From Thalia democratica (lineage: Eukaryota): a DNA stretch of 64,000 nt. Where the stretch lies: the NCBI GenBank assembly GCA_965202585.1, contig OZ241833.1:3658001-3722000 (forward strand), written 5' to 3'. Of this stretch, positions 1 to 57,949 are shown in pieces. The notes beneath the pieces were generated by a model. That model did not search any database. It worked only from the letters and a program-made list of their open reading frames with translations, and had not been told where the DNA came from. The translations under genes and the position numbers were made by a program. How positions within the stretch are numbered: position 1 is the first letter of the stretch; every line of letters begins with the position of its first letter.

Positions 1-1110
1 TTAAAAAAAACTATATGCTAAAAAGCGCAACACTTCAATTTTTTAAAATCGCATTTATGTGCAGTTTTTTATATTTGTTAATGATGCTTACGTTTTATAT
101 ATATTTTAGAAAAAAATATTTCTAAAACTTCAGTTTAAAGTTTTGTTCAAATTATTATTTCGAGTTAAACTATAAGCTTTAATCCCTGATATGTAAAAAT
201 TAAAAATTTTAGGTGGTTTCCCTATTATTATTTACAAGCTAATTTTGGTGAAAATAAAGCATAATTTAATATTTACTAGCAATTCATAGCATATTACTTA
301 TTATTTATTAAATTAACTAATAGTTACTACTAATCTTAATTAAATTCAGTACACATATAAGAGTATATTTTTAATTACTTTTATTTTATTTTTTAAATTC
401 AAAGTTTACTTGTTTTTACCAAGTTATAAAAAGAAAAAAGTCATGGTGGTCCATATCTTCAATTATTTTAGTTGTGACACAAAATAAGTTTATTTCTAAA
501 GCATTAAAAAAATAATTAGTGGAAATTATATTTACTTTAACTTCATTGTTATTAAATAGAATTTGTTTTTATATTTTACACATTCATTGTTAAAGGCCAT
601 GGGTGGGGAATTGACAGTTTTAATTAAAATTTGTCTTAGTTTAAAAACTAGCTGCTAGTTGTTTTTATTGCATCCTGATATTCAAAATAACTTTTGAAAA
701 ATATGAGTTTAAATTTGATAAGTTCAATAGGTGTCTTCTGGAAGGCCATGCTTAAAAATGCTAAAAATACTGAGTACTTTGATATATGTTTCCTTTTACA
801 GCTTTTTACATAATCATTATGAAACCTTCGCAGTCTAATCTGTATTTCTCATGGAAAAATCTTATTTAGGAAATGTTTTTACCTTAAAAAAATTTTAGTC
901 TTTTGAAAAAAATCAATAATTTAAAACTTCATTGTGAATTGCTTACTTTTTATTCATCAAACTGTTAATCATGCAAGGAACATATCTTTAAAAATTTAGT
1001 TCTCTAGAGTAAAATCCTTAGATGCAAGAGATATTTTTTAAGTTTAAAAAAATTAGTCACGACAAGTTGTTCTCTAAAATCTGTATTACAAAAATTTTTT
1101 ATAACTGACT

Positions 1111-1708
1111 GAAGCGTGGGGCACATGTACGACCTCCACGTGAAATTCATTAAAAAAAAAACAGTTTAAACATTAAAGTTTAATTCAACTTAGCTGTTTG
1201 TTTAAATTTGTTCACATTAGCTATGTTTTTAGAGCTTAGTTGGTTTATTTTATAATTTTGAAGTTTTTTACCAATTACTTTTTAGATTAAAAAATTTAGC
1301 AGTTTGTTCACATATTTTATTGTTTGTTTATTTAAAGTTAATTCAAATTTTCTCATGACTAAAACTTAGCTTTAAGCTATAAGTTACTATCCATATATTC
1401 ATAGTAGAATTATGTTTTACAAGTTATTGAGTTGATAATAACTTTTATTTTACAAGTTATTGAGTTGATTATAACTTTTATTTTACAATTTTTATATATT
1501 ATTTCCTCGCTGCACTAAACATAATAACACTTAATACCCTAAATGATTTCTAAAGGAAATTTCCTTACTTTAAAAAAGTGTCACGCTAAATCGGTAAAAA
1601 TTAGTCTAAATCTGAAATTGGCCGGATCGAAGTTGTTCGACCGAAGCTGTGGTGGTCGGTGGGGATGAACAGAAGCGTGGGGCACATGTACAACCTTCAC
1701 GTGAAATT
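1111..1708 (+). repeat. 37-bp direct repeats (1111-1147 and 1672-1708) derived from GUSB exon sequence
   Basis: GAAGCGTGGGGCACATGTAC(G/A)ACCT(C/T)CACGTGAAATT occurs twice with 2 mismatches. The paralog has one copy and lacks the intervening 561 bp. Confidence 0.9.
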
Positions 1709-2155
1709 GTCAGATGGCGACGAGTACCAGCTGCTGGTTGGTATCAGGTGCGGGTGGACGGCACCAGGTTCCTCATTAACAACCGGCCCTTCTACTTTCT
1801 GGGCGTCGGCAAGCACGAGGACTGGGTGACGAGGGGGAAGGGTTTCGATTGGTCCTCCGTCGTCAAGGACTTCAACCTGCTGGAGTGGTTGGGGGTCAAC
1901 TCGTTCAGGACCTCCCACTACCCGTACAGCGAGGAGGTGATGCGGATGTGCGACAAACGGGGCGTCGTCGTCATCAATGAGTGTCCCGCCGTCGGCATGA
2001 AGTACGAAGAAACGTTCAGTGACGTCACCATGCTGCACCACAAGGCGGTCATGCGTGAAATGACGTCACGGGACTACAACCACCCGTCCGTTGTCATGTG
2101 GTCGGTTGCCAACGAGCCCAAGTCGAACACTGAAGCGACTGCTAATTATTTTAAA
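1605..2155 (+). pseudogene. GUSB: Beta-glucuronidase (GH2) exon, copy 1, frameshifted
   Basis: Encodes PKLWWSVGM...[33 protein letters not shown] and WSVANEP (acid/base Glu). It lacks 4 nt (TCGG) near 1748 relative to the paralog, which shifts the frame. GT donor at 2156. The 5' boundary is uncertain. Confidence 0.85.
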
Positions 2156-3290
2156 GTTTGTTGAACTTTTTATTTTGTTAACATCACGTAATATAATTAT
2201 TTTAATTCATTTGTTTGGCTCATTCGTTTTTACATGTTAATAAAAACTTTTTTTTGTGTTAGTAGGTTTAGTATGAGTATTATTTGTACTTTGATTTGAT
2301 GAGTTAGGTTTAGAATAATTTTTGTAAAATATGTTCGTTCTTAGTATATGTTTAAAAGTTCCCTAATTTATAGTTAGTAGTTGTCAATTTTATAATGTTT
2401 TTATTTTATTTTTTGGTTCTGAGGTTTGCTGTTTTAAAAAAACTTAAATAGTAAACTTGTTAATTTACTTTAAATATTTTTTTTATAATTTAATGTTTAA
2501 CTTTTTTTTTGTAAATAAATAATAAGTACTTCAGTTCAAATAAGAAAATATTTTCATAATTGTATTAAAGAAAATGTTATATCTTTATGTTCTGAAGAAG
2601 AAGAGTAAAAGTAACGTTGTTGTTTTTCAATATATGTTTTTTGTTAATCTTACCTATATATATTCATAGAATATTGAAAAAATTCTAAAAATTTGTTAAA
2701 CTTTATTTCTCCACTATATGACTAAAAAAAATAATCTGTCATTTAATCTAGCAACCTTTTAAAGAACTCAATTGAACTATTTTAACATATTATAGATAAA
2801 CATTGTAAGACGTTAGTTTTCAATATTTAAGTCCTATTTAAGCTGTTTTTATTTAACCTTGTAATATTTCAAAACTACATTTTACACATTTAAATATTTT
2901 AATTTAACAAAATTATTAATCTAAAACTTTAAACATTATAAGAAAATTTATATTTAATTATTTAAAAAGTGCTTACTTGTGCATTTTTAAAAAGTTATTC
3001 AAAATAAAACTAGTTTTTTCAGGCATTGAAAGCACGGCATAAGTTTGAAAAAGGTTTAATTAAATTAGTTCACCTACTAAACTTTTGCTTTGAAAATTTT
3101 TACATCAATAGATTGTGTCAACAACTTGTTTATCTTGTTACTTTGTTCAAATATAATGTTAGTTTTTCTTGTTGTAATTACACGCCTTTAGTCGACATCA
3201 ACATCAAAGAAACGATTACTTTACATAAAAAACTAAAGAATATATTTAAAAAGCTTGTGAGTTAAAAACAATTTTTTGTATTTTCCATAG

Positions 3291-3488
3291 GAAGTGATGG
3301 AGTACACCCGCCAACTTGACAGCACAAGACCAGTGACGTTCGCTTGCAACGCCGGTTCAGATCACGACATGGCAAGTCAGTATTGTGACGTCATATCGGT
3401 GAACAACTACCAGTCATGGTACAACGATTACGGCCACACTGAGCTCATACAGGCGCGACTCACCGACTACTTTCAAAAATGGAATCAG
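3291..3488 (+). CDS. GUSB: Beta-glucuronidase internal exon, copy 1
   Basis: TTTTCCATAG acceptor, 198 bp phase 0, EVMEYTRQLDSTRPVTF...DVISVNNYQSWYND, CAG/GT donor. Confidence 0.9.
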
Positions 3489-3843
3489 GTTGGTTTTCAA
3501 AGAATTAGAAACATTTATAATGGCTTCAACTTGTTTAAATTTTTAGTATAGTTTTTTTTTAAGTAGTGGGTATAGTTGTTAACAAACTTATCATATTTAA
3601 ATCTTTAGTATTGTAATGCTACTGCATCACTTAAATCACATTATAGTTTAATAATTCTTTAAATATGTTTGATACATAGTTTAATAGCTTAATTGAAGCT
3701 GGAATATTACTTTAACAAAGTTGTTCAAAAAAAGAATTAGAACAAACCACTGAAAATGTATTATTTTCCAAGAACAAACGCATAAACTACATTTATTATG
3801 CCTGAGCAACACACCAAACCCTACATACAGTTTTATTTTGCAG

Positions 3844-4248
3844 AAATTGAAGAAACCGATAATCCTCACCGAATTCGGAGCCGGATCCGTCTCAGGATTC
3901 CACGCAAACCCGCCACTCATGTACAGCGAGGACTACCAACACGAGCTGATCCAGCAACACTTCGGCGTGTTCAAGCGACTGTGCACAATACAACACCCCT
4001 ACCTAACAGGATCCATGGTGTGGAACTTCGCCGACTTCCAGACCGCCCAAGGACCCAAGAGGGCGCAGGGTAACCGCAAGGGGCTGTTTACCAGGGACAG
4101 GCAGCCGAAAAGTTCAGCGCACTTGGTGAGGAGGCAGTACTTGGAGTGGAGGAATCAGTCCATTTGGGAGAAAACTACAGACAAGATTAATTATAAAAAC
4201 TTCAATTTGAAATACGAATTCGAGCGTGAAGTTTCTGTTATCAACTAA
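3844..4248 (+). CDS. GUSB: Beta-glucuronidase terminal exon, copy 1
   Basis: TTTTGCAG acceptor; KPIILTEFGA (nucleophile Glu), WNFADF, NRKGLFTRDRQPK (NxK motif of glucuronidases); TAA stop. Confidence 0.9.
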   Translation, partial: KLKKPIILTEFGAGSVSGFHANPPLMYSEDYQHELIQQHFGVFKRLCTIQHPYLTGSMVWNFADFQTAQGPKRAQGNRKGLFTRDRQPKSSAHLVRRQYLEWRNQSIWEKTTDKINYKNFNLKYEFEREVSVIN

Positions 4249-6023
4249 CTTTTACTTTAAATATTAAATAATTTTGTTTTGAATATTTAATCATATCTGT
4301 TAACAACTTAAAATAATTTATACAGTCATTTTTTAGATTTTTTTTTATTACCTTATGTATTTTCTTAAAAATGTTGAGGTAAAGTCCACCGTGTTATATT
4401 ATGATTTTAAGTTTACAATTTTCTGTTGTCACTTTTTTTTTCTATCATTTGAGTAACCTTCTGTAGTTACATTTTTTAAACTACTTGTTACAACTTCCTA
4501 GGTTGTTTTATGTAATTGATTTATTGTAAACTAGTTTTATAGTTTTTTATGTTAAACTAAATAAGCTTCGTAAAAGTTTTAAAGGTTTTTTTTCTGTGAA
4601 TAATTATAAAAACGACTGAAATAAAAGTGACATTTTGTATTATTCAAATCATTTTTGTTACGATACTTAATAATAAAAGTCACTTATCGCTTCATTAACT
4701 TAATTAAGTTTTATCTTTTGTTTCGATTAAACAAACAGTACTTCAATAATTCTGTAATACCTGTTGTAACAACTTTTGAAGTAAGTTAATTTTCTTCAAA
4801 CATGGGCTTACTTGGATTGGAGTAATTAAAGAGACAATTTTATTGTCTTGTGCAGTTTTGTGCAGTTTTGCTTTAAAAATAAAAAGATTGCTATTCATTT
4901 GTTGTGTCTTGTTTAATTAAAGTATACTTATCTATTTGTATATACTCCAAGAAGTCAAATAATACCCAGTGCTTTTTTTACTGTCAAACAGTTTCCCCAT
5001 AGAAAGTTCCCTCATTTGTATTAAAAGACAACCTGGTCTCAAGTAGTCAACTACTCCGAACTTATCTTGTAGTACGAACCATACATGGTTCAATAATATA
5101 GGCTTCAAGGGCTCCTTTTTTTATTCAGCAAGATCAAAAGTTGTTTAATCGAATAGAATACTTTAAAATTTATTTAAATTCTTTTTTTAGCGCATACATA
5201 ACGGCATTAAACTCTTTTAAGCACTGCCTACAGACAGGGTTTTAAACAGCTAAATTCAAAGTAATATATATTTTGTTGCTCTCCAAACAGTTGATCCAGA
5301 AATTGTTTCTTTTATAGACTGAATTTTTGCACTTCAAGAAAAGTTCAGGGATTGAAATTTATTTCTGTTAAAAATAAATTAAAGTTTTAATAATATTTTC
5401 TTATGACATACTACATCTTATATATAACATCTTACATATAACTACTATATTTTAAAGTTTTAAGTGGGCTTAGTAATTTTATTTAGAGCTTGTCACTCTT
5501 TCAAACAAAAAAGCAATGCTGATTGAGCAAAATTCAGTATTGAATTTTTTAAGCTAGTTTAAATTAAAAACATATAATTATGTTGGCTAAAAGCTAATTA
5601 AGAAAATAATAAAGTATAATGTTATGCTTATGTATAAGTTTATAATGTAAATGTGGTGAAAAAGAGTATGGCCTGCTAGGGACTTAAATGTTATTAATAT
5701 GGGCTACAAATAAAACAATAGTATAAATTAAAAAGAAATGATAGTTATAGTTTGCATAGTAACAAAAAAAAAAAAATGTTGCAAATTGTAGAAAATTGAT
5801 AAAAATGCATTTGAAAGGGTATATTACGTACATAGGTGTTTTAAGTGAAAAAAATAATTTGGCTAAGTATGAGTCAAGGCTAAATTTAAGGGGTTGGTGG
5901 GTGGGGGATAGGGACGGCATGGTCGCAGAGACACCGTGTGGTGAAAAAACAAGCAAATTTTTTTAATTTAAATTTTTTTAGAACGGTTATGGTGCAATCT
6001 CTGGAGAAGTCTGTGATTCGGTG

Positions 6024-7735: not shown

Positions 7736-10700
7736 TTAGTTGTGTTTACTCTTAAATTTAGTTATTATGCAACATAAAGAGTTAAGACTATTTTTTGAAA
7801 CTTTACAAAAATAAAACTTTAGTTAATGTGTTTTCATGCAGTATAAAAGCTGTATAAGTTTTAAACTCCAAACTAACAGAAACTTTTTAAACATGTTAAT
7901 GAACTTATAATCACTTTTAAAACAATAAAAACAAGTTTTGAACATAAAAAGATAGAAAATATCAGATAGTTGAGTTTATATTTTAGAAGTTAGTAGATGC
8001 GACTGTGGAACGGTAGTGTAGCGGTTGAAGTCTGTGCGTTGAAAGCTAGCGATTTGGGTTACTTGTTGCTCATTTTTATTTAACTTGATATACTATACAA
8101 GTAATTTATAAAATTTACGCTTTCAAAAAGTTTCAATCAGAACTAAAATACAATTGTAATTATATTAAAATATACCAACTAGATCATTATTATTTATTAG
8201 TACTATATTCAGTCTTTATCAAAATAGATTCTTAAAACTAGTTTGCGCATTTTATCAGTAACCTACAAAGATATATAAGAATATTAAGCAAAAAACAATA
8301 CTTATCATCCATCTTTAGGTTTTTCGCTGTAAAATTTAAACTTTAAGTTTCTGTACTATTATTTTCATCTTAAAAAGAAGGATTAGTTTAATATGTCGAT
8401 TTTTACTTGAAATATGCAAAAATGACAACCTTAACTCTTATTTACTTTAATATTTCCAAAAGTACTTTTAAATTACTGTCGTTATGACTTAAAGTAAATA
8501 TTTTAAAAATGACTTATATTTATAAGCATTTTATAACAAAAAGTAGTAAAATTTACACGTACTTTGTTATTAAAGTTAATTAAAGCTTGGTAAATCCAAA
8601 TTTTGCTTAATAAAAAAAATTAAAACTTTTGATAAGCAAAACATTAAATAAGTACTTTTTTACTATTTGTTTTAAACAAAAAAAAAATCAAGTATTAAAA
8701 AGTATATTTGAGCTTCTTATGCAGCTTTTGAAAGGAAATTTTTCTCAAATATCAATATTTGCGTTAATGTTTTATGTAAAATGAGCAGCTTTATCTTCCT
8801 TCTAAGCTTATTTGAATGAAAAGTATAGTAGCCTTGTGTTAATAAACTAGTAATAGAAACTTTCAAAAATATAAATATAATCAAAAAAAGTTAAAAATTA
8901 TAGTACATAAATTTAAATTAAGATCTTAATTAAAACTCTAGTATATATCTGCTATTGATGACTGTGTTTCACGGTCTTTTAGCACCCTTCAAGCGCACAT
9001 TTTAGTTTACTTTGTTTACTCTGAAAGTAAGTTGTTTACTCTGAAAGTAAGTTTAAAGTATGAAATTTTACGTGTAAAACAATAGTATCATCATAGTTTA
9101 ATAATCATTGTTCAAATCCGGGGACTCGGGTTGGACTTACTTGTTGCCAGTTTTTTTTTGGTAACCTAAATTACCACACTAGTAACTTAAAATAAATTAT
9201 TATTTCACAAAGTTTCTATCAGAACTGAAATCTCTTTTGATAATACTTAAGTTTATAAATAATTTAAGTTTGTATAAACTTTTTCTTAAAGCTTATTCAA
9301 TAAACTAACTAAAAGTTTTAAACTTGAAATATTTTAGTAATATAAATAATAGTAAAAAGTATTTTACTGTACGTGCGCTAGTAACCTTGTAAACTTTATA
9401 TATTCAGTTTAAACATCAAGCTAAACGAGTTATGAGAAACCCCATAATCAAGCATAGAAAATATACTAGAAATTTAGATTAAATTGCAAATGAGATTAAT
9501 TCAAATTGAATAACGCAATTTTTTTTTGATAAAAATAAACTAATCATTAAAAGTAAAAAGTTCTGTTTAAACTAAAATGATTGTTTTTTCACATTGTTAA
9601 AAAATGAAGAATTATAAAAGATAAAATAAAACTTGCTGTTTTATTCCTAAAACTGTTAAATGTTTAACTAAAACTATTTATCATAGTTAAATTTAATTTT
9701 GGTAAAAACCATAATATAAATGTAATGTTTGAAATAATCAATTATTAAATAAAAAGGCTAACAACTTTTTAACAATGTAGTGATTTTATTTAAACTAAGA
9801 CTAAAATTAACTTATTATGCAAAACGTGTATAACTATAAAGTTTAAAGTTGTATATTGTTTTATTATATTTGGTCTTATTATCTTTATATGTTACAGTGG
9901 TAAAATTTCAAAATAATTTATATGTCAACTGAATGTTTTTTAAGTGCCATTGTTAGAAAAAACTCCAGCAAGCAATATTTAATAAAATTGGAAAAAAAAA
10001 GCAAACATTGAAAATTAGAATCATTTATTCATTTATGCACCAAACTATTTAGTTTATATTATCCACTTGAGCATTACTAAACTAAAAATTAAGCAGGGGT
10101 CGGCAATCCTTTATAAGTAAAAAAAATCTTACTACAAAGTGCAGCTCGATGGCTGCACTATGTAAAAAAAAAAGTCTTGAATTTCACAACATTTTACTTT
10201 TTCCTTGTTCTATAAAAGTAAAAACAAATAAATTTTTTGTACATATTAATTAAATCTACTTACACATTTAGTTCTTTTTTTGAATATTTATTATTTTTTG
10301 AGTTCTGGCATTTAATTAAGTTTTTTTTTTGTTAATTTGAGTTGTTTTCGGTATTTGAATTGCCATAAAACCAAAAGTTTTATTTAAGTAAACAATTCTA
10401 AATAAATGTTAGACAAAAATTTACAAATTTTTTAAATTAAGTATTACGGTGTGTTACAAAACCTTTTTTGTTCTTATAAGTATTTAAGTTAAAAAAAACT
10501 ATATGCTAAAAAGCGCAACACTTCAATTTTTTAAAATCGCATTTATGTGGAGTTTTTTATATTTGTTAATGATGCTTAAGTTTTATATATATTTTAGAAA
10601 AAAATATTTCTAAAACTTCAGTTTAAAGTTTTGTACAAATTATTATTTCGAGTTAAACTATAAGCTTTAATTCCTGATATGTAAAAATTAAAAATTTTAG

Positions 10701-11597
10701 GTGGTTTCCCTATTATTATTTACAAGCTAATTTTGGTGAAAATAAAGCATAATTTAATATTTACTAGCAATTCATAGCATATTACTTATTATTTATTAAA
10801 TTAACTAATAGTTACTACTAATCTTAATTAAATTCAGTACACATATAAGAGTATATTTTTAATTACTTTTATTTTATTTTTTAAATTCAAAGTTTACTTG
10901 TTTTTACCAAGTTATAAAAAGAAAAAAGTCATGGTGGTCCATATCTTCAATTATTTTAGTTGTGACACAAAATAAGTTTATTTCTAAAGCATTAAAAAAT
11001 TATTGGTGGAAATTATATTTACTTTAACTTCATTGTTATTAAATAGAATTTGTTTTTATATTTTACACATTCATTGTTAAAGGCCATGGGTGGGGAATTG
11101 ACAGTTTTAATTAAAATTTGTCTTAGTTTAAAAACTAGCTGCTAGTTGTTTTTATTGCATCCTGATATTCAAAATAACTTTTGAAAAATATGAGTTTAAA
11201 TTTGATAAGTTCAATAGGTGTCTTCTGGAAGGCCATGCTTAAAAATGCTAAAAATACTGAGTACTTTGATATATGTTTCCTTTTACAGCTTTTTACATAA
11301 TCATTATGAAACCTTCGCAGTCTAATCTGTATTTCTCATGGAAAAATCTTATTTAGGAAATGTTTTTACCTTAAAAAAATTTTAGTCTTTTGAAAAAAAT
11401 CAATAATTTAAAACTTCATTGTGAATTGCTTACTTTTTATTCATCAAACTGTTAATCATGCAAGGAACATATCTTTAAAAATTTAGTTCTCTAGAGTAAA
11501 ATCCTTAGATGCAAGAGATATTTTTTAAGTTTAAAAAAATTAGTCACGACAAGTTGTTCTCTAAAATCTGTATTACAAAAATTTTTTATAACTGACT

Positions 11598-12085
11598 GAA
11601 GCGTGGGGCACATGTACGACCTCCACGTGAAATTGTTGGATGGCGACGAGTACCAGCTGCCGGTTGGTATCAGGTCGGTGCGGGTGGACGGCACCAGGTT
11701 CCTCATAAACAACCGGCCCTTCTACTTCCTGGGCGTGGGCAAGCACGATGACTGGGTGACGAGGGGGAAGGGTTTCGATTGGTCCTCCGTCGTCAAGGAC
11801 TTCAACCTGCTGGAGTGGTTGGGGGCCAACTCGTTCAGAACCTCCCACTACCCGTACAGCAAGGAGGTGATGCGGATGTGCGACGAGCGGGGCGTCGTCG
11901 TCATCGATGAGTGCCCCGCCGTCGGCATGAAGTACGAAGAAACGTTCAGTGACGTCACCATGCTGCACCACAAGGCGGTCATGCGTGAAATGACGTCACG
12001 GGACTACAACCACCCGTCCATTGTCATGTGGTCGGTTGCCAACGAGCCCAAGTCGAACACTGAAGCGACTGCAAATTATTTTAAA
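11598..12085 (+). pseudogene. GUSB: Beta-glucuronidase exon, copy 2, 5'-truncated but in frame
   Basis: Open frame GHMYDLHVKL...GIRSVRVDG...WSVANEP. The upstream PKLWW part of the exon is absent. GT donor at 12086. Confidence 0.85.
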
Positions 12086-13180
12086 GTTTGTTGAACTTTT
12101 TATTTTTTTAACATCACGTAACATAATTATTTTAATTCATTTGTTCGGCTCATTTGTTTTATTTTTTTTTTGTTAGTATGTTTAGTATGAGTATAATTTG
12201 TACTTTGATTTGATGAGTTAAACTTAGAATAATTTTTGTAAATCATAGTATATTTTTGATAGTTCCCTAATTTATAGTTAGTAGTTGTCAGTTTTATAAT
12301 GTTTTTATTTTATTTTTGGTTCTGAGGTTTGCTGTTTTAAAAAAACTTAAATAGTAAACTTGTTAATTTACTTTCAAATTTTTTTTATAATTTAATGTTT
12401 AACTTTTTTTTGTAAATAAATAATAATTACTTCAGTTCAAATAAGAAAATATTTTCATAATTGTATAAAAAAAATGTTATATCTTCATGTTCTGAAGAAG
12501 AAGAGTAAAAGTAACGTTGTTGTTTTTCAATATATGTTGTTTGTTAACCTTACCTATAGTTCATTGTATAATGAAAAAGTTCTAAAAATTTGTTAAACTT
12601 TATTTCTCCACTATATGATTAATAATCTGTCATTTAATCTAGCAACCTTTTAAAGAACTCAATTGAACTATTTTAACTTATTATAGATAAACATTGTTAG
12701 ACGTTAGTTTTTAATATTTAAGTCCTATTTAAGCTGTTTTTATTTAACCTTGTAATATTTTCAAAACTACATTTTACACATTTAAATATTTTAATTTTAC
12801 AAAATTATTAATCTAAAACTTTAAACATTATAAGAAAATTTATATTTTATTATTTAAAAAGTGCTTACTTGTGTTTTAAAAAGTTATTCAAATTAAAACT
12901 AGTTTTTTTCAGGTATTAAAAGCACGGCATAAGTTTGAAAAAGGTTTAATTAAATTAGTTCACCTACTAAACTTTTGCTTAGAAAATTTTTACATCAATA
13001 GATTGTGTCAACAACTTGTTTATCTTGTTACTTTGTTCAAATATAATGTTAGTTGTTCTTGTTGTAATTACACGCCTTTAGTCGACATCAACATCAAAGA
13101 AATAATTTCTTTACATATAAAACTAAAGAATATATTTAAAAAGCTTGTGAGTTAAAAACAATTTTTTGTATTTTCCATAG

Positions 13181-13378
13181 GAAGTGATGGAGTACACCCG
13201 CCAGCTTGACAGCACAAGACCAGTGACGTTCGCTTGCAACGCCGGTTCAGATCACGACATGGCAAGTCAGTATTGTGACGTCATATCGGTGAACAACTAC
13301 CAGTCATGGTACAACGATTACGGCCACACTGAGCTCATACAGGCGCGACTCACCGACTACTTTCAAAAATGGAATCAG
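13181..13378 (+). CDS. GUSB: Beta-glucuronidase internal exon, copy 2
   Basis: Same AG/GT boundaries and translation as 3291-3488. Confidence 0.9.
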
Positions 13379-13736
13379 GTTGGTATTCAAAGAATTAGAA
13401 ACATTTATAATGACTTTAACTTATTTAAATTTTTAGTATAGTTTTTTTTTTTAAGTAGTGGGTATAGTTGTTAACAAACTTATCATATTTAAATCTTTAG
13501 TATTGTAATGCTATTGCATCACTTAAATCACATTATAGGTTAATAGTTCTTTAAATATGTTTGATACATAGTTTAATAGCTTAATTGAAGCTGGATTATT
13601 ACTTTAACAAAGTTGTTCAAAAAAAGAATTAGAACAAACCACTAAAAATGTATTATTTATCAAGAACAAACGCATAAACTATATTTATTATGCCTGAGCA
13701 ACACATCAAACCCCTACACACAGTTTTATTTTGCAG

Positions 13737-14141
13737 AAGTTGAAGAAACCGATAATCCTCACCGAGTTCGGAGCCGGATCCGTCTCAGGGTTCCACGCAA
13801 GCCCGCCACTCATGTACAGCGAGGACTACCAACACGAGCTGATCCAGCAACACTTCGGCGTGTTCAAGCGACTGTGCACACTCCAACACCCCTACCTCAC
13901 CGGATCCATGGTGTGGAACTTCGCCGACTTCCACACCGCCCAAGGACCCAAGAGGGCGCAGGGCAACCGCAAGGGGCTGTTTACCAGGGACAGGCAGCCG
14001 AAAAGGTCAGTGCACTTGGTCAGGAAGCAGTACTTGGAGTGGAGGAATCAGTCCATTTGGGAGAAAACTACAGACGAGACTGATGATAAAAACTTCAATT
14101 TGAAATACGAATTCGAGCGTGAAGTTTCTGTTATCAACTAA
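13737..14141 (+). CDS. GUSB: Beta-glucuronidase terminal exon, copy 2
   Basis: KPIILTEFGA, NRKGLFTR, stop; paralog of 3844-4248. Confidence 0.9.
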   Translation, partial: KLKKPIILTEFGAGSVSGFHASPPLMYSEDYQHELIQQHFGVFKRLCTLQHPYLTGSMVWNFADFHTAQGPKRAQGNRKGLFTRDRQPKRSVHLVRKQYLEWRNQSIWEKTTDETDDKNFNLKYEFEREVSVIN

Positions 14142-16701
14142 CTTTTACTTTAAATATTAAATAATTTTGTTTTTGAATTGTTAATCATATCTAATAACAA
14201 CTTAAAAAATTTTATACAGTCATTTTTTAGATTTTTTTTTATTACCTTATGTATTTTCTTAAAAATGCTGAAATAAAGTCCACCGTGTTATATGATTTTA
14301 AGTTTACAATTTTCTGTTGTCACTGTTTTTTTCTATCATTTTGAATAACCTTCTGTAATAACATTTTAAAATGATTAAAACTTCCTAGGTTGTTTTATGT
14401 AATTGATTTATTGTAAACTAGTTTTATAGTTTTTTATTTAAAACTAAATAAGCTTCGTAAAAGTTTTAAAGGTTTTTTTTTCTGTGAATAATTATAAAAA
14501 CGACTGAAATAAAAGTGACATTTTGTATTATTCAAATCATTTTTGTTACGAAACTTAATAATAAAAGTCACTTATCGCTTCATTAACTTAATTAAGTTTT
14601 ATCTTTTGTTTCGATTAAACAGACAGTACTACTAATTATGATACTGAAAATTTTACTAAAAAAGTTGACCCGTTACTTTTAAATGGGTGGCAACCCTAAT
14701 ACAAATAAACTAAATTTATAATAATTTTTTTACGTAATTTTTACTTTAAACTTAAAACTATTTTTTTTTAAATCAAAATAACATTCAAAAATCCGAGTAA
14801 GGACTTAGTTTAAACAAGTCTGAGGCCTTAAAATTTCACTTATTTTTTATATTTTTTTAGCTCTTAGTTTAAACTAAATTACTTTAAATAAAAAAAGTAA
14901 AATAAAATCACTATTTTTGGAAAATCGAAAAGCTGTACAATAATTAATTAGTAGTATTCCCGGATGAGTAATACTCGTCTTTATAAAAATTATTCGATTT
15001 TATCCACTTTTAGTGTTAGTTTATTTGTCACTAAAACTTTTGGATGGAGATAATACAAGTTTAAACTTTTCTTAACGAAGATTTTAAATTGTATATCTAA
15101 GGGTTCACAGTTTATCCATAACTGGAGAAAAATGCTTTAAATTTTTTTCTTAAGAATTTAAGATCAAAAGAACCAGCTTTAAAGGAATTTAGGTTTGTTG
15201 CTTCAATTTGTCTATTACGTTAAGTAAACTTTTATGAGGCCGTTTGAGGATTGCTTAAATGAAGTTTTGAAAGTAATCAAAAGTTAACCGTGTGAAAAAT
15301 AAAAGATTATTAACAACCTTAATTTTTAAATGTTTAAACTTGTTTTAAATGGTTTAGAAAATTATATTTTAATTCTTTTTTAATAAATTGTTAGTTAAAA
15401 AGATACACTTTTAGCTCTTTTTTTTTTTAAACTACAAATGAATAAACTTATGTATATTTAGCACATTTTTCAGTCTCTTACTTGCCAAACTTTTGAACAT
15501 TAAAAAACAATAGAATGTTTGAAATAAAACTGAGGATAATTTAATAAACCAAAATAACTTATAAGTTTTGTAGGTAATTATAAAATAACAGACAACTATC
15601 ACCAGTTACTGTTTTTTTTGCAACTATGTTTTTCTGATATACTTATAGCCGGTTTACGGCAACCATATATTAATAGTTTTAATTTTATATAAAACATTTC
15701 ATAATTCATCCACTAAAAAAAAACTCGCATCTACTAAACGTCAAAATCAAAAAAAAATAGTTGAAATAAAAAGTGAATTTGTTTTATATTTAAGTAAACT
15801 TTAAAAGAATAATTTTCGTAAGAAAAAAAAACGCATAAAGCAAAAACTTTTTAGAAAGCAACTACTTTTGATAACTTTGTCCTATATTTTTTGTTTAAAT
15901 CAATTGATTTAGGTTTTGGCTGCATTAAAACTGTGTTTTAGAATTTATAAATATTGTTTTTTAATAGTTTCCTTTTTCTAGTTCCGCGCAATTTGCTTCA
16001 TGTTCAGTTAGTGTAATAAATTTAATCAATAAAATGAACAAAAGTTTTCAAATACAAACTATTCATTAATCTACAAATTAATCAAACAATCATTCTATTT
16101 TCATTATTGTACCTTGAGTATAGTCTGCATGATTTATTAAGTTAGTACTGAATAAAAAACATAAGTTTATTAATACAGTAAAACACCAAAATGTTCTTAA
16201 TTTCAGACACATTAATCATTTATATACAAACGTTAGCCTGTAAATGGATATTTATTTTTTGCTTGACTTTTACTTCTTCTGAAAATTATAAGTGATATAA
16301 GATAGGTATAAAAAAAAATTTAAGTATTGGTACATTTTGATTCAGTATTTATTTTTCAAAATTTATTACCTTAAGGTAATGCATTCTAAAATAGATATCA
16401 AAATGTTATGAATAAAAACTGAAGTTTTGAAAACTGTTAGTTTTTCACATAATTTTCAAAAATAACTGCTATACCACACTTTTTTGATATAACATGATAG
16501 TTGTTTGATAGACAAACTTATAAACTAAAAAAAAATGTTATTGTATGAGGTATTTGTCATATTTAACTTAAAGTACAAAAAAGCTTATCTACGCTGAAAA
16601 TTAACACATTTCTATGAATACAAGTATTTTGATGATCTAAATGATGTAATAGTGTTCAATACATTTTATAACTTTACAGCGTTAGTTTATTACCTCACAT
16701 T

Positions 16702-34640: not shown

Positions 34641-36628
34641 TCAGCGTATCTAGCGTGGCTGATGAATAGACTCATAGAAATGAAGAGGGTACAAGAATCG
34701 CTGAAAAACTAAAAGCTGAACCTACATCCAATGGAAGCGGCTGAAGGAAAAAGCTGTGGGTTCCGACGGTCTCAATCGGGAAATGGTTCGTGCGGTCGAC
34801 GTACACACTTGGAAAAGCTGGTTCAACCAGTTTCTGGACTGCAGGCATCCGGTTCAGACTAACACTCATTCCAAAGGTTGACAAGCCTAAGTCGCCCGGG
34901 GACTATAGGCCCATTAGCGTCGGCTTGGTGGCAAGGAAGTTGTACAGTATGGTACTGAACGCTAGACTGAGCAAGATCGAACATGAGTTGGAGCAGCGCG
35001 GTTTCACCGCCTGTGTGGAAGGATGTCCAATCAACTTGGCTGTAGTGCAGGAGGCCATTCAGAGCACCAAGATGCATGGCGGGGAAATGTCATACGCGTT
35101 TTTGGACGTCGCCAAGGCGTTCGATTCTGTCAATCATGTGAAGATAATTGAAACGTTGGCGCACAGGGGAATGCCCAAGCACATGTTGGTGGCAGTGGCC
35201 AATCTGTATCAGGGCAATCAGATCGCTCGCATGGAAGGCCAATGGAAGTGAGGAGAGGCGTTGTGCAGGGAGACCCGCTATCCCCTACGATTTTCAAACT
35301 TGTGTTGGATGAGATCCTCCGAGACGGAGGCACCGACAGGATGATGCTCACGGGTGTGAGACACCGGGACGCGCTGAGCCACACCGCCTACGCGGATGAC
35401 ATAGCGTTGTTCGCGGGCTGCAGACGAAGATCAATCGTCTGACGGCCAGAATGCTAGCGTACGGCTTGAAGCTCAAGCCGTCGAAATGTGCAGCCGCACA
35501 CCTGAGAAGACACCCGGAGAACGGCCTGTGGTATGTCGCCAGCAGGCCGAAAATTATGATCTACGGCGGGCGCGTCGCCAACTTGAGTGCAGAACAGCAC
35601 TACCGCTACCTGGGCATAGAGTTGCACCCGGAAGGGAGCACTCGAGTGACCCTCGACATAGACCGCCTTTTGGGCAGAACAAAGGCGTGCAAGCTTACCG
35701 TGCAGCAGAAGCTGCACATCGTCAGAAACAACAAGCTGGCAAAAGCGCGTTACGTCACCGACCTTGGCAAGGTCAGGGACGAATAAACCAATTACTGTGA
35801 TGTCCGGGTGCGGGAGTGCGTCCGTAGGCTCTGCGATCTAGATCGGTCCGTTCCGGACGGTTACATCCATGCCAACGCCAGAGATGGCGGCATGGAAATA
35901 GCGCGTCTGGTCGAGACCACCAACCGAAGCAGGTCCCGCCGCAGGTCGCGGTTCAAACGAATATTTGACGACCCACAGGCGCGGGCCATGGGCAGGTGGA
36001 TAAGGCCAGGACAGAGAGTTTCTGAGCATTCGGAGAGACGAAGCCTCTGGACCACGGAGGGTGGAACCTGCGGAACCACACGGTAGGAAGAGGCTACCGC
36101 AGCCTATGGATTCGTACCTTACCTCCCGGTGTGGAGGAGAGTACGTTCGTCGACATGGTGATGAAGACGTCAGACCCGAACCGTCGGGAGGAGACTGCCG
36201 ACACTGCCCGGGCTTGGTGTCGTTGATAATGCACGTACTCAACGAGTGTCACACAGGACCTGGTCGCAAAAAGACACGAGGCGGTAATGGAGAAACTTTT
36301 GGGACTGTTACGATCGTATCGAGAGGATGTACCGGCGGGGAGCGTCAGGTGAGTACCGAGCAGACTTCATACTGTTCGACCCACAGGGGTTCGGACTGAC
36401 CGTGAGCGTCGCTATTGTGGATTCGGGAATGAACCTTTGTGAAGTTAGAGACCGCCTCTGCGGAGAAGAGGAGTTGGTGTACGCGCACGCGAACGGCGCC
36501 GATGAAGCTTTCTTCCTGGTCATGGATGATCGAGGAGTATGGGCGAAAGACAGCCGGTCCGACTTGAAGAAGATCGGCTTGGAGAAGTCAGTTCACGATC
36601 TATTGTCAGTTGAGGTCTTGGCATGGAC
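34640..36628 (+). mobile_element. R2-like family 2 copy (RT to RLE), truncated by LTR-derived sequence
   Basis: GVVQGDPLSP, YADDIAL, KRH, ADFIL...GVWAKDSRSDLKKIGL; breaks at GCATGGAC (36628). Confidence 0.9.
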
Positions 36629-36742
36629 ATCAATTCAAATTTCTAAATGTGTGAATTTTTTCTTGTTTATGAAGAAAGGGTGTTTTTTATCTTCCAACAA
36701 AAAGGCAGAGGAGAAGTAGAGTGACGATTCTCTTTCAACAGT

Positions 36743-36755
36743 GGAGAAGAGGAAG
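36743..36755 (+). other. Polypurine tract directly 5' of the LTR
   Basis: GGAGAAGAGGAAG abuts TGTAAC at 36756. Confidence 0.7.
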
Positions 36756-37102
36756 TGTAACAGGATATCAAGTTGCACTTGATTACTGTTTAAATTTGGT
36801 TGGAAGTTTTGAGCTAAAAGTTCATTCAAGCGTTAAGAGAAAGCTGGCAAGGTCAAGTTTTATACTGATGCAAGTTTAATACAGTTGACAAAAGGAGAAA
36901 ATAAAGTGCAGACCAGAAACCCTGATGCAACATTGAGTTATGGAATGTTATATATAAGCTGATACAACAGACAGATGGGGAGATTCTAGCCACAGCCTGC
37001 TGCAGTAAACGTGATAATGAAGAATAGACATTTATATTGTTTTCTTGTGTTATATAAAGTGTTTTTTGATTAGTATTATTTTTATAAGTATTTCTTAGTT
37101 AC
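36756..37102 (+). mobile_element. Truncated LTR (first 347 bp), left arm of the viral cassette
   Basis: Starts TGTAACAGG, has TATATAAG at 36951, and is the reverse complement of 38655-39001 with about 3 mismatches. Confidence 0.85.
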
Positions 37103-37115
37103 TCCATATATATAC

Positions 37116-38374
37116 TCAATATTAGCCCATCCGAGCCTTTCCAGAGATTACCGGACTACGTGACCTCACGCATTAGATCCGTATCTTTCCCCAGCGGCCC
37201 TGCAGAAAGTGAAAGAACCACGTTGCTTAGTCAAGCTCGAGCTATCTGTTCTTTCTCACAGGGTGTCTCAAGAAGCCTCACGGTCTACGAGGGGGAGTGC
37301 CCTCCTATTTACTTCCCATCTCAGATATCTATCACAGCAGAAGTGGTTCTGTTCGCCAATGGCAACTTACAACCAGACCTGGTGCCCTATTTGCTGGGAT
37401 GTGTTATTATAGGTGAAGTGAGCGAGGAATCTGAGCTTTCCCCCATCATTTCCAAAGCCCTGGGGAATTGGATGTCCCTGCTCCCGATGACATGGGAGTT
37501 CCCCTACTGAAACGTCATCCTGAGATCAAAGAACAAGTAAAGGGAAAGTTTGAAGAAGCTCCCGAAGTCAGCTCCAATAGTGCCAGTTGGTGGGGGAAAG
37601 AAGCTCTTAAAGACATCGTTGAGTTTCTGATTTCCAACATAATCCTCCAAGATTCCATGATGGAAAGTAAGGTTTCGGCTCTTGATGATAGATTGAAGAA
37701 ACTGGACATATCCGACAACATCAAGAAATTGGGCTCTAAGAGACCTAGGATTCAGCAGGAAGAGTTTGTGGCCCATTTCTTGATAGGATTAGTTTCAAAA
37801 TCCCTTGGGGGGTTCACTGGAAAGTTGGCTTATTCCTTTGCGAAGAGGAAAGGCAATAAGGCTGTCAATGTCTCCAACATGACTGGAGATGAGAAGATGA
37901 TTCTTTCATTGATGGCTGCAGCTCATGCAAAGATGCTCCCTGACTTCGGGAGGGTGAATGCCATTTTCAAGAAAGTTCTCGAAGAAATCAACAACTTTAA
38001 AGATAAGTTCGGAAATCCTTATTGGGATTACACAAGAGTGCATTACAAAGAAGGGGCTCCAGAGAAAGAGTACATAGATGCCTTCACTTATGTTATGGGA
38101 AATCTAGGGGAAACACGAGTGTTAGAGCAGACAAATTCTACTCGCCAAATAACCAATCTCAAAGTCTATTAGCTGAATCAGACTATCGATGAACCAAAAT
38201 CAGTCAACTGCTTTCACATTGAACAATCCCAGTGCAACGATGGCAACTCCCGGTGGAAGCTTGTCCAAAAAAACCAACCAATCCCAAGTCAACTCGGCCC
38301 AAAGCAAGTTCGGAGGAACCGTTTCGCTCGCAAATCCCATCCCAAAACCGGTCTTCAATATTAGCCCACCCGAG
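37116..38374 (+). pseudogene. Candidate endogenous viral element: circularly permuted nucleoprotein-like gene (~407 aa when re-joined)
   Basis: Intron-less and more GC-rich than host DNA. Frames 37118-37490 and 37468-38172 join by restoring one C that is present in copy 2. ATG at 38189 leads in frame into the terminal repeat. YIDAFTYVMG resembles the mononegaviral N motif. Confidence 0.55.
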
Positions 38375-38381
38375 GACGCCA
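38364..38381 (-). other. Primer-binding site complementary to a tRNA-Asn 3' end
   Basis: Minus strand reads GGTTACA-AT-TGGCGTCCTCGGGTGGGC. Plus strand AGCCCACCCGAGGACGCCA matches 17/19 of the vertebrate tRNA-Asn(GTT) end AGCCCACCCAGGGACGCCA as recalled. Confidence 0.8.
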
Positions 38382-38383
38382 AT

Positions 38384-39001
38384 TGTAACCTACAGATGTA
38401 GGTACCTTTAATACTAAACTTAACTTATACTAAATAATGATACTAATAATACTTAGGCTACTCTATATAAAACTAGGCATGACATGAGTTAACATATTTT
38501 ATATAAAGAACAATTGCAAACACTAACAAATATGTAAAGAACATCAAATTAAGAAAATACTTTAAATGTGGTCAAAACCTTTACACAAGTTTTAATCTAG
38601 CAAGAATATACTTTAAGAATGTATAAAACAAAATACGAGTTAACTATTTAGAATGTAACTAAGAAATACTTATAAAAATAATACTAATCAAAAAACACTT
38701 TATATAACACAAGAAAACAATATAAATGTCTATCCTTCATTATCACGTTTACTGCAGCAGGCTGTGGCTAGAATCTCCCCATCTGTCTGTTGTATCAGCT
38801 TATATATAACATTCCATAACTCAATGTTGCATCAGGGTTTCTGGTCTGCACTTTATTTTCTCCTTTTGTCAACTGTATTAAACTTGGATCAGTATAAAAC
38901 TTGACCTTGCCAGCTTTCTCTTGACGCTTGAATGAACTTTTAGCTCAAAACTTCCAACCAAATTTAAACAGTAATCAAGTGCAACTTGATATCCTGTTAC
39001 A
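38384..39001 (-). mobile_element. Complete 618-bp LTR in 5'-LTR configuration (followed by PBS)
   Basis: TGTAAC...GTTACA termini, PBS 2 nt downstream, TATA box, and the PPT seen before the sister arm. Confidence 0.8.
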
Positions 39002-39669
39002 CCTTTTCAACGCTTTAACAAAGTGACAGAGTTATATTAAATTTAACTATGGATCATCTTAATCTTTATACTTAAGGTTTAAAACAATTTTAACATGTTG
39101 CTTTTTATTTTATAATAAATATAATTAGCCCTACCTTGAACACTGTGTACTTTTCAAGTTGATAGTTGCTGTAAATGTAAAACAAAAAAAAAGACAAATC
39201 ATTTATAACGATTAATGATAGTGCAGACACAAGCTGCATCTAGAACCATTGGGTTAAAGAATGATGAAAAATATGAATGGTCTGTTCAAAACAGAAAAGA
39301 CAATTGGGATAAATGGTTTCAATAACAATTTTCACTTTAAAAACAAATTGGATCAGGAAGGTGCCCCTTAGTTGTTGGTAATACCAGAGGAAATGTGAAA
39401 CCAGAGTACTGTCCATTCTTCCAAAATGAAAAAAAATAACCGACGCAGTTAGCCATCCTGGACCACACAAACGCAAGATGCGTCCAAACAAAAAGACTAC
39501 GCACGATGAGACACAACAAGCTGCTAGACATGATGTCGTGCTAGATCACATGATAAAAGCCTGAAGCAGCAAAGAGTGGATGCTGAAAAGATACGTCAGA
39601 GAGCCTAACATTAAAGGGGAAGGGGCAATTAGAAACTGAAGCCCGATATACCCAGCAATCAAAGATATC

Positions 39670-54780: not shown

Positions 54781-55618
54781 AATGTATATTTAAAACGCTT
54801 TAGTGTTCATAGTGAAAAAGATATTTTTATACTTATCAATAGTAACACTATGTGAAAAGAATTACTTCAAGTTGTGCAACAGTTGTTTGCAGAAGCCGAA
54901 ATAGTAAATTAAAAAAATGTATTGTTTATTATAAAGCTGTAACCTTAGGTACTTCTTAAACATGGTGACACAGTAATAGTGGATATAACAACTATAAAAT
55001 ATTTTTTGTCCGTTAAAAGACACAGCTTAAGAGAAAATTTCCGCTTTATTTCTGCTCTACTCTATTTAGAAGCACAACTAAAATACCTAACAATATTTTT
55101 TTGCTGGAGATGATTTTGTGAATACTTGATAAATAAGGTACGTAACTATATACAAAAAATAGTATACAAAACATTTAGTAAAATAATGATTGACTGTGGA
55201 GAAGCACTAATACTATCTCGGGATCGAACTGCATCCTGAGGGGAGCACGGTTCAAGTAAAAAATTAAAGGAAAGGAAAGTTACATATTTATTTAGACAAA
55301 TCTTAAAGTCTTGATTATTGATTTATTTATGTAGGCAATTTCAGACAAGATTCATGAATTATAATATTAATAAGTAAATTTATAGTTAAGAAACTACGTA
55401 ATTATTATACTATCTTGAAAGATCTCTAAGCAGATTTAAATAACTAAGTTTGTTTCATTAAAATAAGAGCATTTTAGAACTATATATACTAAAAAAGCTT
55501 TATGTTAATTGTGGCAAAATATGTATTCATATTTTAAAGCCTTTTAAAGCATAAATTTTGAAAAAACAGCCAATACCATTTGTACTATCTGCAATGATAG
55601 TATTAAAAAAAGTACCTT

Positions 55619-55965
55619 TGTAACAGGATATCAAGTTGCACTTGATTACTGTTTAAATTTGGTTGGAAGTTTTGAGCTAAAAGTTCATTCAAGCGTTAAG
55701 AGAAAGCTGGCAAGGTCAAGTTTTATACTGATGCAAGTTTAATACAGTTGACAAAAGGAGAAAATAAAGTGCAGACCAGAAACCCTGATGCAACATTGAG
55801 TTATGGAATGTTATATATAAGCTGATACAACAGACAAATGGGGAGATTCTAGCCACAGCCTGCTGCAGTAAACGTGATAATGAAGAATAGACATTTATAT
55901 TGTTTTCTTGTGTTATATAAAGTGTTTTATGATTAGTATTATTTTTATAAGTATTTCTTAGTTAC
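55619..55965 (+). mobile_element. Truncated LTR left arm, cassette copy 2, preceded by target CCTT
   Basis: AGTACCTT-TGTAACAGG; near-identical to 36756-37102. Confidence 0.85.
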
Positions 55966-55987
55966 TCCATATTACTCCATTTATATA

Positions 55988-56731
55988 TTCAATATTAGCC
56001 CATCCGAGCCTTTCCAGAGATTACCGGACTACGTGACCTCACGCATTAGATCCGTATCTTTCCGCAGCGGCCCTGCAGAAAGTGAAAGAACCACGTTGCT
56101 TAGTCAAGCTCGAGCTATCTGTTCTTTCTCACAGGGTGTCTCAAGAAGCCTCACGGTCTACGAGGGGGAGTGCCCTCCTATTTACTTCCCATCTCAGATA
56201 TCTATCACAGCAGGAGTGGTTCTGTTCGCCAATGGCAACTTACAACCAGACCTGGTGCCCTATTTGCTGGGATACTTATATTATAGGTGATGTGACTGTT
56301 ATTATAGGTGAAGTGAGCGAGGAATCTGAGCTTTCCCCCATCATTTCCAAAGCCCTGGGGAATTGGATGTCCCTGCTCCCCGATGACATGGGAGTTCCCC
56401 TACTGAAACGTCATCCTGAGATCAAAGAACAAGTAAAGGAAAAGTTTGAAGAAGCTCCCGAAGTCAGCTCCAATAGTGCGAGTTGGTGGGGGAAAGAAGC
56501 TCTTAAAGACATCGTTGAGTTTCTGATTTCCAACATAATCCTCCGAGATTCCATGATGGAAAGTAAGGTTTCGGCTCTTGATGATAGATTGGAGAAACTG
56601 GACATATCCGACAACATCAAGAAATTGGGCTCTAAGAGACCTAGGATTCAGCAGGAAGAGTTTGTGGCCCATTTCTTGATAGGATTAGTTTCAAAATCCC
56701 TTGGGGGGTTCACTGGAAAGTTGGCTTATTC
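55988..56731 (+). pseudogene. Second, 3'-truncated copy of the nucleoprotein-like insert
   Basis: Near-identical to 37116-37836. It carries a +22-nt difference near 56268-56300 but is intact at the copy-1 frameshift. Confidence 0.6.
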
Positions 56732-56733
56732 TT

Positions 56734-56802
56734 ATTATTTAGTATAAGTTAAGTTTAGTATTAAAGGTACCTACATCTGTAGGTTACAATTGGCGTCCTC
56801 GG
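56734..56802 (+). mobile_element. Inverted fragment of LTR 3' end plus PBS
   Basis: ...TGTAGGTTACA-AT-TGGCGTCCTCGG is the reverse complement of 38370-38438. Confidence 0.85.
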
Positions 56803-57121
56803 TTAAAGAATAACTAGTCTTTTAAATAACAGTTAAATATTACCAAGACACTATTTTACCCAAATAAGTTTTATTAGTGTATTACCTTTTATTTTGAAAG
56901 CAGTATTTATCACAATTTTATCTCACATTCCTATATTTTTGTTTTTTTTTATATACTGCATTTTATCTAGTAGTAGATTTAGAGAAATTTTACAACAAAT
57001 TGTGCATTTAATTTTTAAGAAGCAATACTCACATTTACTATATGCCCATTTAAAAGCCTTTGAGTTTGTACCTATAACCAGAATGAATAGGGGGTTAGGA
57101 AAACTAATAAGTCAAAATTGA

Positions 57122-57290
57122 ACTGACTAAATTATTGTCCAAAAAGTCAAAGTAGTTGTGATAAATATATGAACAAAAAGTCAAAACTGCACTGACAAAA
57201 TTATTGTCCAAAAAGTCAAAGTAGTTGTGACAAAATTATTAACAAAAAGTCAAAGTTGATATGACAAATTTCAGTAAAAAAGTCAAAATA
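57122..57290 (+). repeat. Degenerate ~33-bp tandem repeat (AAAAAGTCAAA core, 5 units)
   Basis: The core motif recurs at ~33-bp spacing with alternating unit variants. Confidence 0.75.
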
Positions 57291-57949
57291 AAAAAAACTA
57301 ACAAGGTATAAGTTTAAATAAGTCTTAAAAGTGGTGACTAATTTTATTTGAAAGTGAGTGATATTAGATTTATCTAAGGCTCTTAAATCTTAATAGCACA
57401 ATAAAAAAAGAAAATATTTATTAATAACTAAGACAGCAAAGACCAGTAACATGCTGAAAATTTTTGGAGTTTGTATTATAGGGGATTATTATATTAATGA
57501 TAGTGCAGACACAAGCTGCATCTAGAACCATTGGGTTAAAGAATGATAAAAAATATGAATGGTCTGTTCAAAACAGAAAAGACAATTGGGATAAATGGAT
57601 TCAATAACAATTTTTACCTTAAAAAACAAATTGGATTAGGAAGGTGCCCCTTAGTTGTTGGTAATACCAGAGGAAATGTGAAACCAGAGTAGTGTCCATT
57701 TTGCAAAAATGGGAAAAAAAATCGACGCAATTAGCCATTCTGGACCACATAAACGCAAGCTGCGTCAAAACAAAAAGGACTACGCACGATGAGACACAAC
57801 AAGCTGCTAGACATGATGTCGATCACATGACAAAAGCCTGAATCAGCAAAGAGTGGATGCTGAAAAGATACGTCAGAGAGCCTAATATTAAAGGGGAAGG
57901 AGGCAAGGTGGAACTCAAGCCCGACATACCCAGCAATCAAAGATATTTA

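Follow-up and report, generated by a model that had tools for sequence, protein, structure and literature searches.

How does an unrelated open reading frame (ORF) come to be fused to the primer binding site (PBS) of a retrotransposon with long terminal repeats (LTRs)? The question is raised by a locus in a 64,000-nt stretch of Thalia democratica DNA (contig OZ241833.1 of assembly GCA_965202585.1, positions 3,658,001 to 3,722,000; hereafter the window), where an orphan ORF-bearing insert lies between inverted parts of such an element. The entry of RNAs that lack a reverse transcriptase (RT) gene into animal germlines is known in outline only, as template switching by the RT of a retroelement. 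We propose, with confidence that stands at about even, that the locus is the fossil of an aberrant RT product of a tRNA-Asn-primed LTR retrotransposon that captured an unrelated ~1.24-kb orphan-ORF RNA. The locus, which exists in two copies in the window, keeps to the nucleotide three joints at obligatory stops of LTR reverse transcription: the joints coincide with the 3' end of plus-strand strong-stop DNA, with R(+1), and with position 1 of U3, where a target duplication is found. These three positions point to a chimera made by RT, since random DNA breakage would not produce them.

Joints between the retrotransposon and the insert

Copy 1 of the chimera contains the following features, from left to right.

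36629-36755, plus strand: putative 3' end of the element's internal region (127 nt unique in the window; homology to the array units stops at 36628)
36743-36755, plus strand: polypurine tract, the 13-nt all-purine run GGAGAAGAGGAAG, directly before an LTR start
36756-37102, plus strand: LTR positions 1-347 (part of U3) in a 3'-LTR context; left arm of an inverted repeat
37103-37115, no strand: AT-rich filler of 13 nt between the LTR piece and the left 20-mer
37116-37135, plus strand: left 20-mer, with the tRNA-like 12-mer at 37124-37135; its variable position is T
37136-38354, plus strand: the putatively captured ORF-bearing sequence (orphan gene), with one frameshift; 38170-38172 is the stop of the last ORF, and an ATG stands at 38189
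38355-38374, plus strand: right 20-mer; its variable position is C, and its last 11 nt overlap the PBS
38364-38381, minus strand: PBS of 18 nt, complementary to the tRNA-Asn(GTT) 3' end plus CCA
38382-38383, minus strand: AT spacer between LTR and PBS
38384-39001, minus strand: complete LTR of 618 nt, ends TGTAAC...GTTACA
38469, 38438, and 38412, minus strand: predicted LTR landmarks TATATA, the initiator (Inr)-like TCATT with A(+1), and ATTAAA, respectively
39001-38439 and 38438-38384, minus strand: predicted U3 and predicted R-U5, respectively
39002-39005: CCTT target-site duplication on the right-hand side of copy 1; the array-unit sequence next to it continues without interruption in sister units

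Read on the minus strand, the complete LTR ends in CTGTAGGTTACA at 38384 and is followed by AT (38383-38382), by the 18-mer TGGCGTCCTCGGGTGGGC (38381-38364), and then by the antisense of the ORF-bearing insert. This is the order that the original prediction had given for this joint, and the coordinates agree. The LTR has TG...CA bounds with a short terminal inverted repeat, and the tRNA complement sits 2 nt past the LTR end. The 618-nt LTR contains two TCAKT motifs, only one of which has a TATAWA 26-34 nt upstream: the TATA is at LTR position 533, A(+1) at LTR position 564 (31 nt apart), and ATTAAA at LTR position 590. The length of R-U5 would be 55 nt if LTR 564 is the transcription start, as these motifs predict. 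LTR, spacer, and PBS are found exactly at two places in the window, copies 1 and 2; the LTR-PBS 21-mer has only these two matches there and no exact match among metagenome contigs. Gag and pol are absent from the 64-kb window, so no superfamily can be assigned to the element. Nor does a direct-orientation LTR pair enclose gag and pol, the LTR copies of copy 1 being inverted: the left LTR piece differs from the full LTR at 3/347 positions and has the opposite orientation. The 13-nt purine run abuts the start of this piece and is preceded by ~114 nt of unique sequence, which together indicate a 3'-LTR context.

No tRNA gene was found in the window. We built a tRNA search pattern from the window letters only, using the 16 nt beside CCA and the T-stem strand implied by base pairing, and the pattern matched four metagenome loci. 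One of them (L048, 679-755) is a tRNA-Asn(GTT) according to both ARAGORN and Rfam, with the 3' end ...AGCCCACCCGAGGACG; another (L049) is the same tRNA with its 5' end cut off. The 3' end of this metagenome, not host, tRNA plus CCA is the exact complement of the 18-mer, in support of the proposal that tRNA-Asn primes the element. In viral contigs, a 15-mer scan gave 44 chance matches, none within a tRNA (0 of 44), and the T-arm pattern had no match. A metagenome contig also carries a tRNA-Asn-like pseudogene that lacks the anticodon arm (L046, 915-1010, minus strand); its 3' end is the same as the PBS complement, and it adjoins a tRNA-Pro gene.

The last 18 nt of plus-strand strong-stop DNA are templated by the tRNA primer. 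In copy 1, the insert meets the 3' end of the LTR-AT-18-nt PBS unit with a 12-nt overlap that contains 11 matches, and the homology stops exactly at the 12-mer, i.e., at the primer 3' end. The two sequences are AGCCCATCCGAG at 37124-37135 and AGCCCACCCGAG at 38363-38374, with one base different; the original prediction had drawn attention to this 11/12 match and to the G-U pair that may form at the mismatch, and both stand. The mismatch base is of the tRNA type on the primer side, and the other base is present in both far-side copies of the repeat. At this stringency the window contains 3 matches to the 12-mer where 0.12 are expected by chance, and an 11/12 match is expected in only ~0.1-0.2% of sequences with the size and composition of the insert. 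Chance thus does not account for the homology: either it guided the joint or the two 20-mers share descent.

The similarity is longer than its tRNA-like part. A direct repeat of 20 nt, TCAATATTAGCCCAYCCGAG, is present at 37116-37135 and at 38355-38374 with 19/20 identical positions, and a third instance of the 20-mer lies at 55989-56008, inside copy 2. Eight of the 20 nt, TCAATATT, lie upstream of the tRNA-like part and are not tRNA-like. Because these 8 nt are identical, the two 20-mers must be copies of each other. The original prediction had regarded the 12-mer as the gene's own sequence, a view that this extension of the repeat undercuts. Before A58, tRNAs of the L048/L049 type read TTCA or TTCG while the window reads TATT, so TCAATATT is not tRNA-derived. 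The 20-mer may belong to either the captured RNA or the leader of the element, and both owners are kept in what follows.

Copy 2 adds the second joint. Its features are as follows.

55615-55618: CCTT target site to the left of copy 2
55619-55965, plus strand: LTR positions 1-347, starting at the host junction
55966-56008, plus strand: filler of 23 nt and the 20-mer (55989-56008)
56009-56731, plus strand: 5' ~60% of the putatively captured sequence, with 6 substitutions and 3 indel events relative to copy 1
56732-56802, plus strand: two extra nt, then LTR 564-618 (R-U5, 56734-56788), AT, and the first 12 nt of the PBS (56791-56802)
56803-57486, plus strand: AT-rich unique stretch of 684 nt, a putative untranslated leader, joined to an array unit at 57486/57487

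In copy 2, R-U5 and the PBS read on the plus strand, as the captured gene does, and the joint between insert and LTR falls on LTR position 564, exactly the predicted transcription start A(+1). This joint looks like the run-off end of minus-strand strong-stop DNA. The element parts of the two copies are 99.2-99.4% identical, except that the PBS is 18 nt long in copy 1 and 12 nt long in copy 2, whose next 6 nt match at 1/6. Such a difference is expected if the copy-1 18-mer was templated by the tRNA and the copy-2 12-mer by the element RNA. The joint between filler and U3 position 347 is common to both copies, so that one was copied from the other or both came from a common template. The filler itself is 23 nt long at 55966-55988 and 13 nt long at 37103-37115; copy 2 seems to duplicate ~10 nt, including the last bases of the LTR piece. 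The AT-rich stretch contains a 69-nt tandem repeat (2.3 copies, 57109-57268) and resembles in this the repeat-bearing leaders of some LTR retrotransposons.

The third joint is with the host DNA. Each copy has a U3 terminus as its outer end, and the pair is bordered by a single 4-bp target duplication, a length within the 4-6 bp expected of an LTR retrotransposon. Copy 2 starts at ...CCTT/TGTAAC and copy 1 ends at TGTTACA/CCTTTTCAACGC, and the empty target site ...GTACCTTTTCAACGC... is present in four sister array units. Both sides of the duplication are LTR starts, and they are in different array units. The flanks of the two halves are ~95% alike, against ~99.3% (99.2-99.4%) for the element parts. 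A single chimera may have reached two units by gene conversion, by duplication with later conversion, or by two site-specific insertions, all of which are possible. A segmental duplication followed by two deletions does not suffice to explain the two copies, the flanks being ~95% alike when the element parts are ~99.3% alike. The length of the 20-nt repeat, the inverted LTR piece with its polypurine tract, copy 2, and the shared target duplication were all absent from the original prediction.

The units that surround both copies form an array (26000-62000), in which each unit bears RT sequence of a long interspersed nuclear element (LINE) and all are on the plus strand. They are 85-96% alike and mosaic, with a period of ~4.3 kb, and they are G+C-rich relative to the host. 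The two units that hold the retrotransposon junctions are different ones, but the site used is homologous; gene conversion or a preference for this target may be the reason.

Identity of the captured gene

The G+C content of the captured gene is 45.5%, compared with 27.6% in the first 26 kb of the window and 25-30% in the surrounding DNA, and its frame is split by one frameshift with each piece open. The transposons of the locus are also G+C-rich, so that foreign composition and a broken frame do not discriminate a viral element. The gene had been called virus-like; our searches lend this no support. It had no match in Pfam, in PDB (by sequence and by profile), or in IMG/VR. When two parts of the gene were used for a word-seeded search of 5.8 billion proteins, one unnamed Tara contig protein was the only return, and an exhaustive phmmer search of 1.84 billion representatives gave no relative beyond one unnamed Tara protein. 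These searches thus gave no viral or named relative, and significant similarity to a protein of an exogenous virus, by which an endogenous viral element (EVE) is recognised, was not found in these collections. The AlphaFold model of the captured protein, with a predicted local distance difference test (pLDDT) score of 34, was too poor for a fold search. In 36500-39100, no ribozyme or tRNA-like Rfam family matched at E<=1, and across the whole window none reached the gathering score; the self-cleaving ribozyme motifs that characterize retrozymes were likewise not found.

The sole relative is encoded by a 1.76-kb Tara Oceans contig (L001), with ~70% identity over ~250 residues and one in-frame stop. 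A few nucleotides past the gene stop and in the same frame, this contig carries the N-terminal part of a non-LTR RT (1403-1756; RVT_1, E=4e-6). The junction between gene and RT looks like a LINE template switch or the joint of a 5'-truncated LINE. The contig ends showed no terminal overlap in a circularity test, and homology was not significant either between the C-terminal tail of the relative and window positions 38136-38354 or between the upstream part of the contig and the 5' part in the window. The gene has thus been caught beside two retroelement classes, which fits an abundant RNA and does not make the gene viral. The window contains no free-standing copy or paralogue of it.

The two 20-mers are spaced by 1,239 nt, which is 3 x 413 nt. 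An ATG is found 16 nt past the stop codon, and its frame crosses the right 20-mer in the codon phase of the open frame of the left 20-mer. Together with the 3 x 413 nt spacing, this frame weakly suggests a circularly permuted copy of unit length plus 20 nt. The codon score for 38173-38354 favours the downstream-ATG frame; an LTR control shows that this score is unreliable.

Elsewhere in the window, positions 1-4742 and 10489-14630 form a segmental duplication (94-99% identity) with a glycoside hydrolase family 2 (beta-glucuronidase-like) exon. This exon is 92% identical to a Tara Oceans scaffold protein, and its best named matches are from arachnids, at ~55%.

Weighing the explanations

How could RT have produced this arrangement? 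The 3' end of plus-strand strong-stop DNA would have annealed to the tRNA-like 12-mer in the sense RNA, through 11 Watson-Crick pairs and one G-U pair, and would have been extended into antisense cDNA; the 12-mer would have served as acceptor instead of the normal partner of strong-stop DNA. Synthesis would then have crossed the 12-mer site again after one unit (1,239 nt) and halted 20 nt later. Such a double passage could reflect a circular or end-to-end-used template, with a stop after ~20 nt of displacement, or else priming 8 nt from the RNA 5' end, after which RT moved to a second molecule at its 3' end. After the 13-nt filler, RT may have switched into the element RNA at U3 position 347 and continued through the polypurine tract and the internal region. 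At the RNA 5' end, a jump back into the captured sequence would give the chimeric 5' LTR, and integrase could have inserted the product via its two U3 ends. The original prediction had LTR-PBS DNA primed on a foreign RNA: the joints at RT landmarks favour its RT-made chimera, and its assignment of the 12-mer to the captured RNA falls back to one of two options.

Several points weigh against this history. Should TAATATTGA follow the 18-nt PBS in the natural leader, there was no mimicry, and the repeat is an artefact of the target or of duplication. Protein collections, metagenome contigs, and IMG/VR yielded no independent occurrence of either the element or the captured RNA; hence the 20-mer, TCAATATT especially, may come from the element leader and not from the captured RNA. 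With LTR arms that are ~1% diverged, the one mismatch could have arisen afterwards by ordinary mutation, and what ends the PBS of copy 2 at 12 nt could be the breakpoint of a rearrangement and not inheritance. With flanks only ~95% alike, a history of one integration needs further steps. The stretch after the stop codon is a weak candidate for the true N-terminus of the gene, as stops are scarce there in each of the three frames and the codon score is noisy. Finally, the order of the template switches is a reconstruction.

In one rival explanation, the 20-mer is retrotransposon sequence, consisting of PBS positions 8-18 and 9 nt of leader. A cDNA would have inserted into an aberrant LTR-PBS/inverted-LTR structure, for example by the target-primed reverse transcription of LINEs, which makes long target duplications, and the repeat would be a 20-bp target-site duplication that involves no mimicry. 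The repeat directly flanks the insert and extends 8 nt past the tRNA-like part, the locus is surrounded by LINE RT fragments arranged in an array, a LINE RT adjoins the gene's sole relative, and 1 mismatch in 20 nt is compatible with ~1% divergence. A LINE-mediated retrocopy is recognised by a long target-site duplication and a 3' tail; the 20-nt flanking repeat is present here, but a tail, A-rich or other, was found at neither end of the insert. The explanation also requires that an unexplained palindrome existed beforehand, that an insertion hit the PBS exactly, and that the R(+1) joint of copy 2 arose in an event of its own, and the copy-2 sequence past PBS position 12 differs from the supposed leader. 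We regard it as doubtful, though far from fanciful. Joining at the DNA level would make the 12-nt homology a substrate of repair: if a copy of the gene already lay near a conventional insertion, breakage and then inversion or microhomology-mediated end joining could have linked the two. The region is indeed a rearranging array with units 85-96% alike, both copies have further illegitimate junctions with the array (36628/36629 and 57486/57487), and the 347-nt inverted repeat is recombinogenic. Yet the three joints match RT landmarks to the nucleotide, and the window lacks the free-standing gene copy that such a history calls for, which makes it unlikely in our view.

Two further explanations fare worse. 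The captured RNA could itself have been the primer in place of tRNA-Asn, its 3' end at the 12-mer annealing to the PBS and being extended to minus-strand DNA, and the RNA later being copied into the plus strand. This would give the topology observed (gene sense, tRNA-like sequence, AT, antisense LTR). In retroviral plus-strand strong-stop synthesis, copying is stopped by a modified tRNA base; an ordinary RNA has no such base, so that read-through beyond 18 nt would be explained. But the 3' end of the RNA would have to coincide exactly with the 12-mer, pairing would be limited to 5 nt if the 12-nt PBS of copy 2 is the inherited form, and the mismatch base on the primer side is of the tRNA type and not the gene type. 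An RNA primer is therefore very improbable. As for an assembly artefact, inverted repeats with a short spacer are a known pattern of fold-back or chimeric reads and could have created the inverted LTR arrangement. We give this next to no credence: the arms differ at 3/347 positions, which excludes the fold-back of one read, the joint common to both copies is found again 19 kb away, where it has substitutions and indels of its own, and the host junctions show a proper target duplication.

Returning to the RT-made chimera, it invites a broader conjecture, which we consider rather unlikely: that short tRNA-3'-end-like stretches in foreign RNAs are landing pads for the plus-strand strong-stop DNA of LTR retrotransposons, and that an unsampled virus-like lineage living in marine zooplankton supplied the captured RNA, a replicon of ~1.24 kb, circular or copied end to end, which an LTR element (window) and a LINE (L001) caught independently of each other. 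If true, the sequence of an RNA would partly decide whether it becomes endogenised. The original prediction had already spoken of a sequence-encoded rule of capture; as a rule, this generalises from a single event.

Comparison with known systems

In the second strong-stop transfer of LTR elements, the 3' end of LTR-PBS DNA anneals via its copy of the PBS and is then extended. The normal acceptor is the complementary PBS at the end of minus-strand DNA, whereas the acceptor proposed here is a foreign RNA that matches imperfectly over 12 nt. Processed pseudogenes and EVE insertions made by LINEs share with our locus an intronless insert with a direct repeat of up to ~20 bp around it, and LINEs are abundant at the locus. 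Unlike them, the insert here has no tail, its repeat overlaps the PBS, and it lies between LTR parts at RT landmarks.

Chimeras of non-retroviral RNA and LTR elements have been described in other animals. In mice, a recombinant of an intracisternal A particle (IAP) and lymphocytic choriomeningitis virus (LCMV) reportedly arose when the non-retroviral RNA was reverse transcribed by an LTR-element RT. In insects, non-retroviral RNA is copied by LTR-element RT via copy-choice (PMC5857290), reads of viral cDNA-LTR chimeras are mainly at LTRs, the opposite orientation is possible, and circular forms occur (Goic 2013, cited in Poirier 2018, PMC5857290). Both the insect and the IAP-LCMV chimeras are somatic or cell-culture DNA of known viruses. 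Here, in contrast, the chimera is germline-fixed, its joint is nucleotide-defined at the PBS, and the captured gene has no demonstrable viral relative.

In LTR-mediated retroposition, microsimilarity at the joints has a median of 6 bp and filler is 2-26 bp long (Tan et al. 2016, Genome Res; PMC5131818); neither the PBS nor strong-stop DNA is mentioned in the text of that paper (PMC5131818). As in that process, a captured, RNA-derived sequence lies here between discontinuous parts of an LTR element, and the three fusion points show microsimilarity or filler (12 nt at 11/12, 13-23 nt, and 2 nt). More than two template switches occur in both cases, and in both the chimera can act as a pseudo-element. 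The differences are that the joints here are at strong-stop ends (the PBS 3' end and R+1) and not in internal ORFs, that the LTR copies are inverted and present two U3 termini, and that no parental gene is known here. If the 12-nt match belongs to the captured RNA, the hypothesis that follows is that junctions should be in excess at R(+1) and at the 3' ends of PBSs, and that tRNA-like stretches should be present in the RNAs that are captured. If the match is part of the element leader, what the locus offers is just LTR-mediated retroposition in a well-preserved form.

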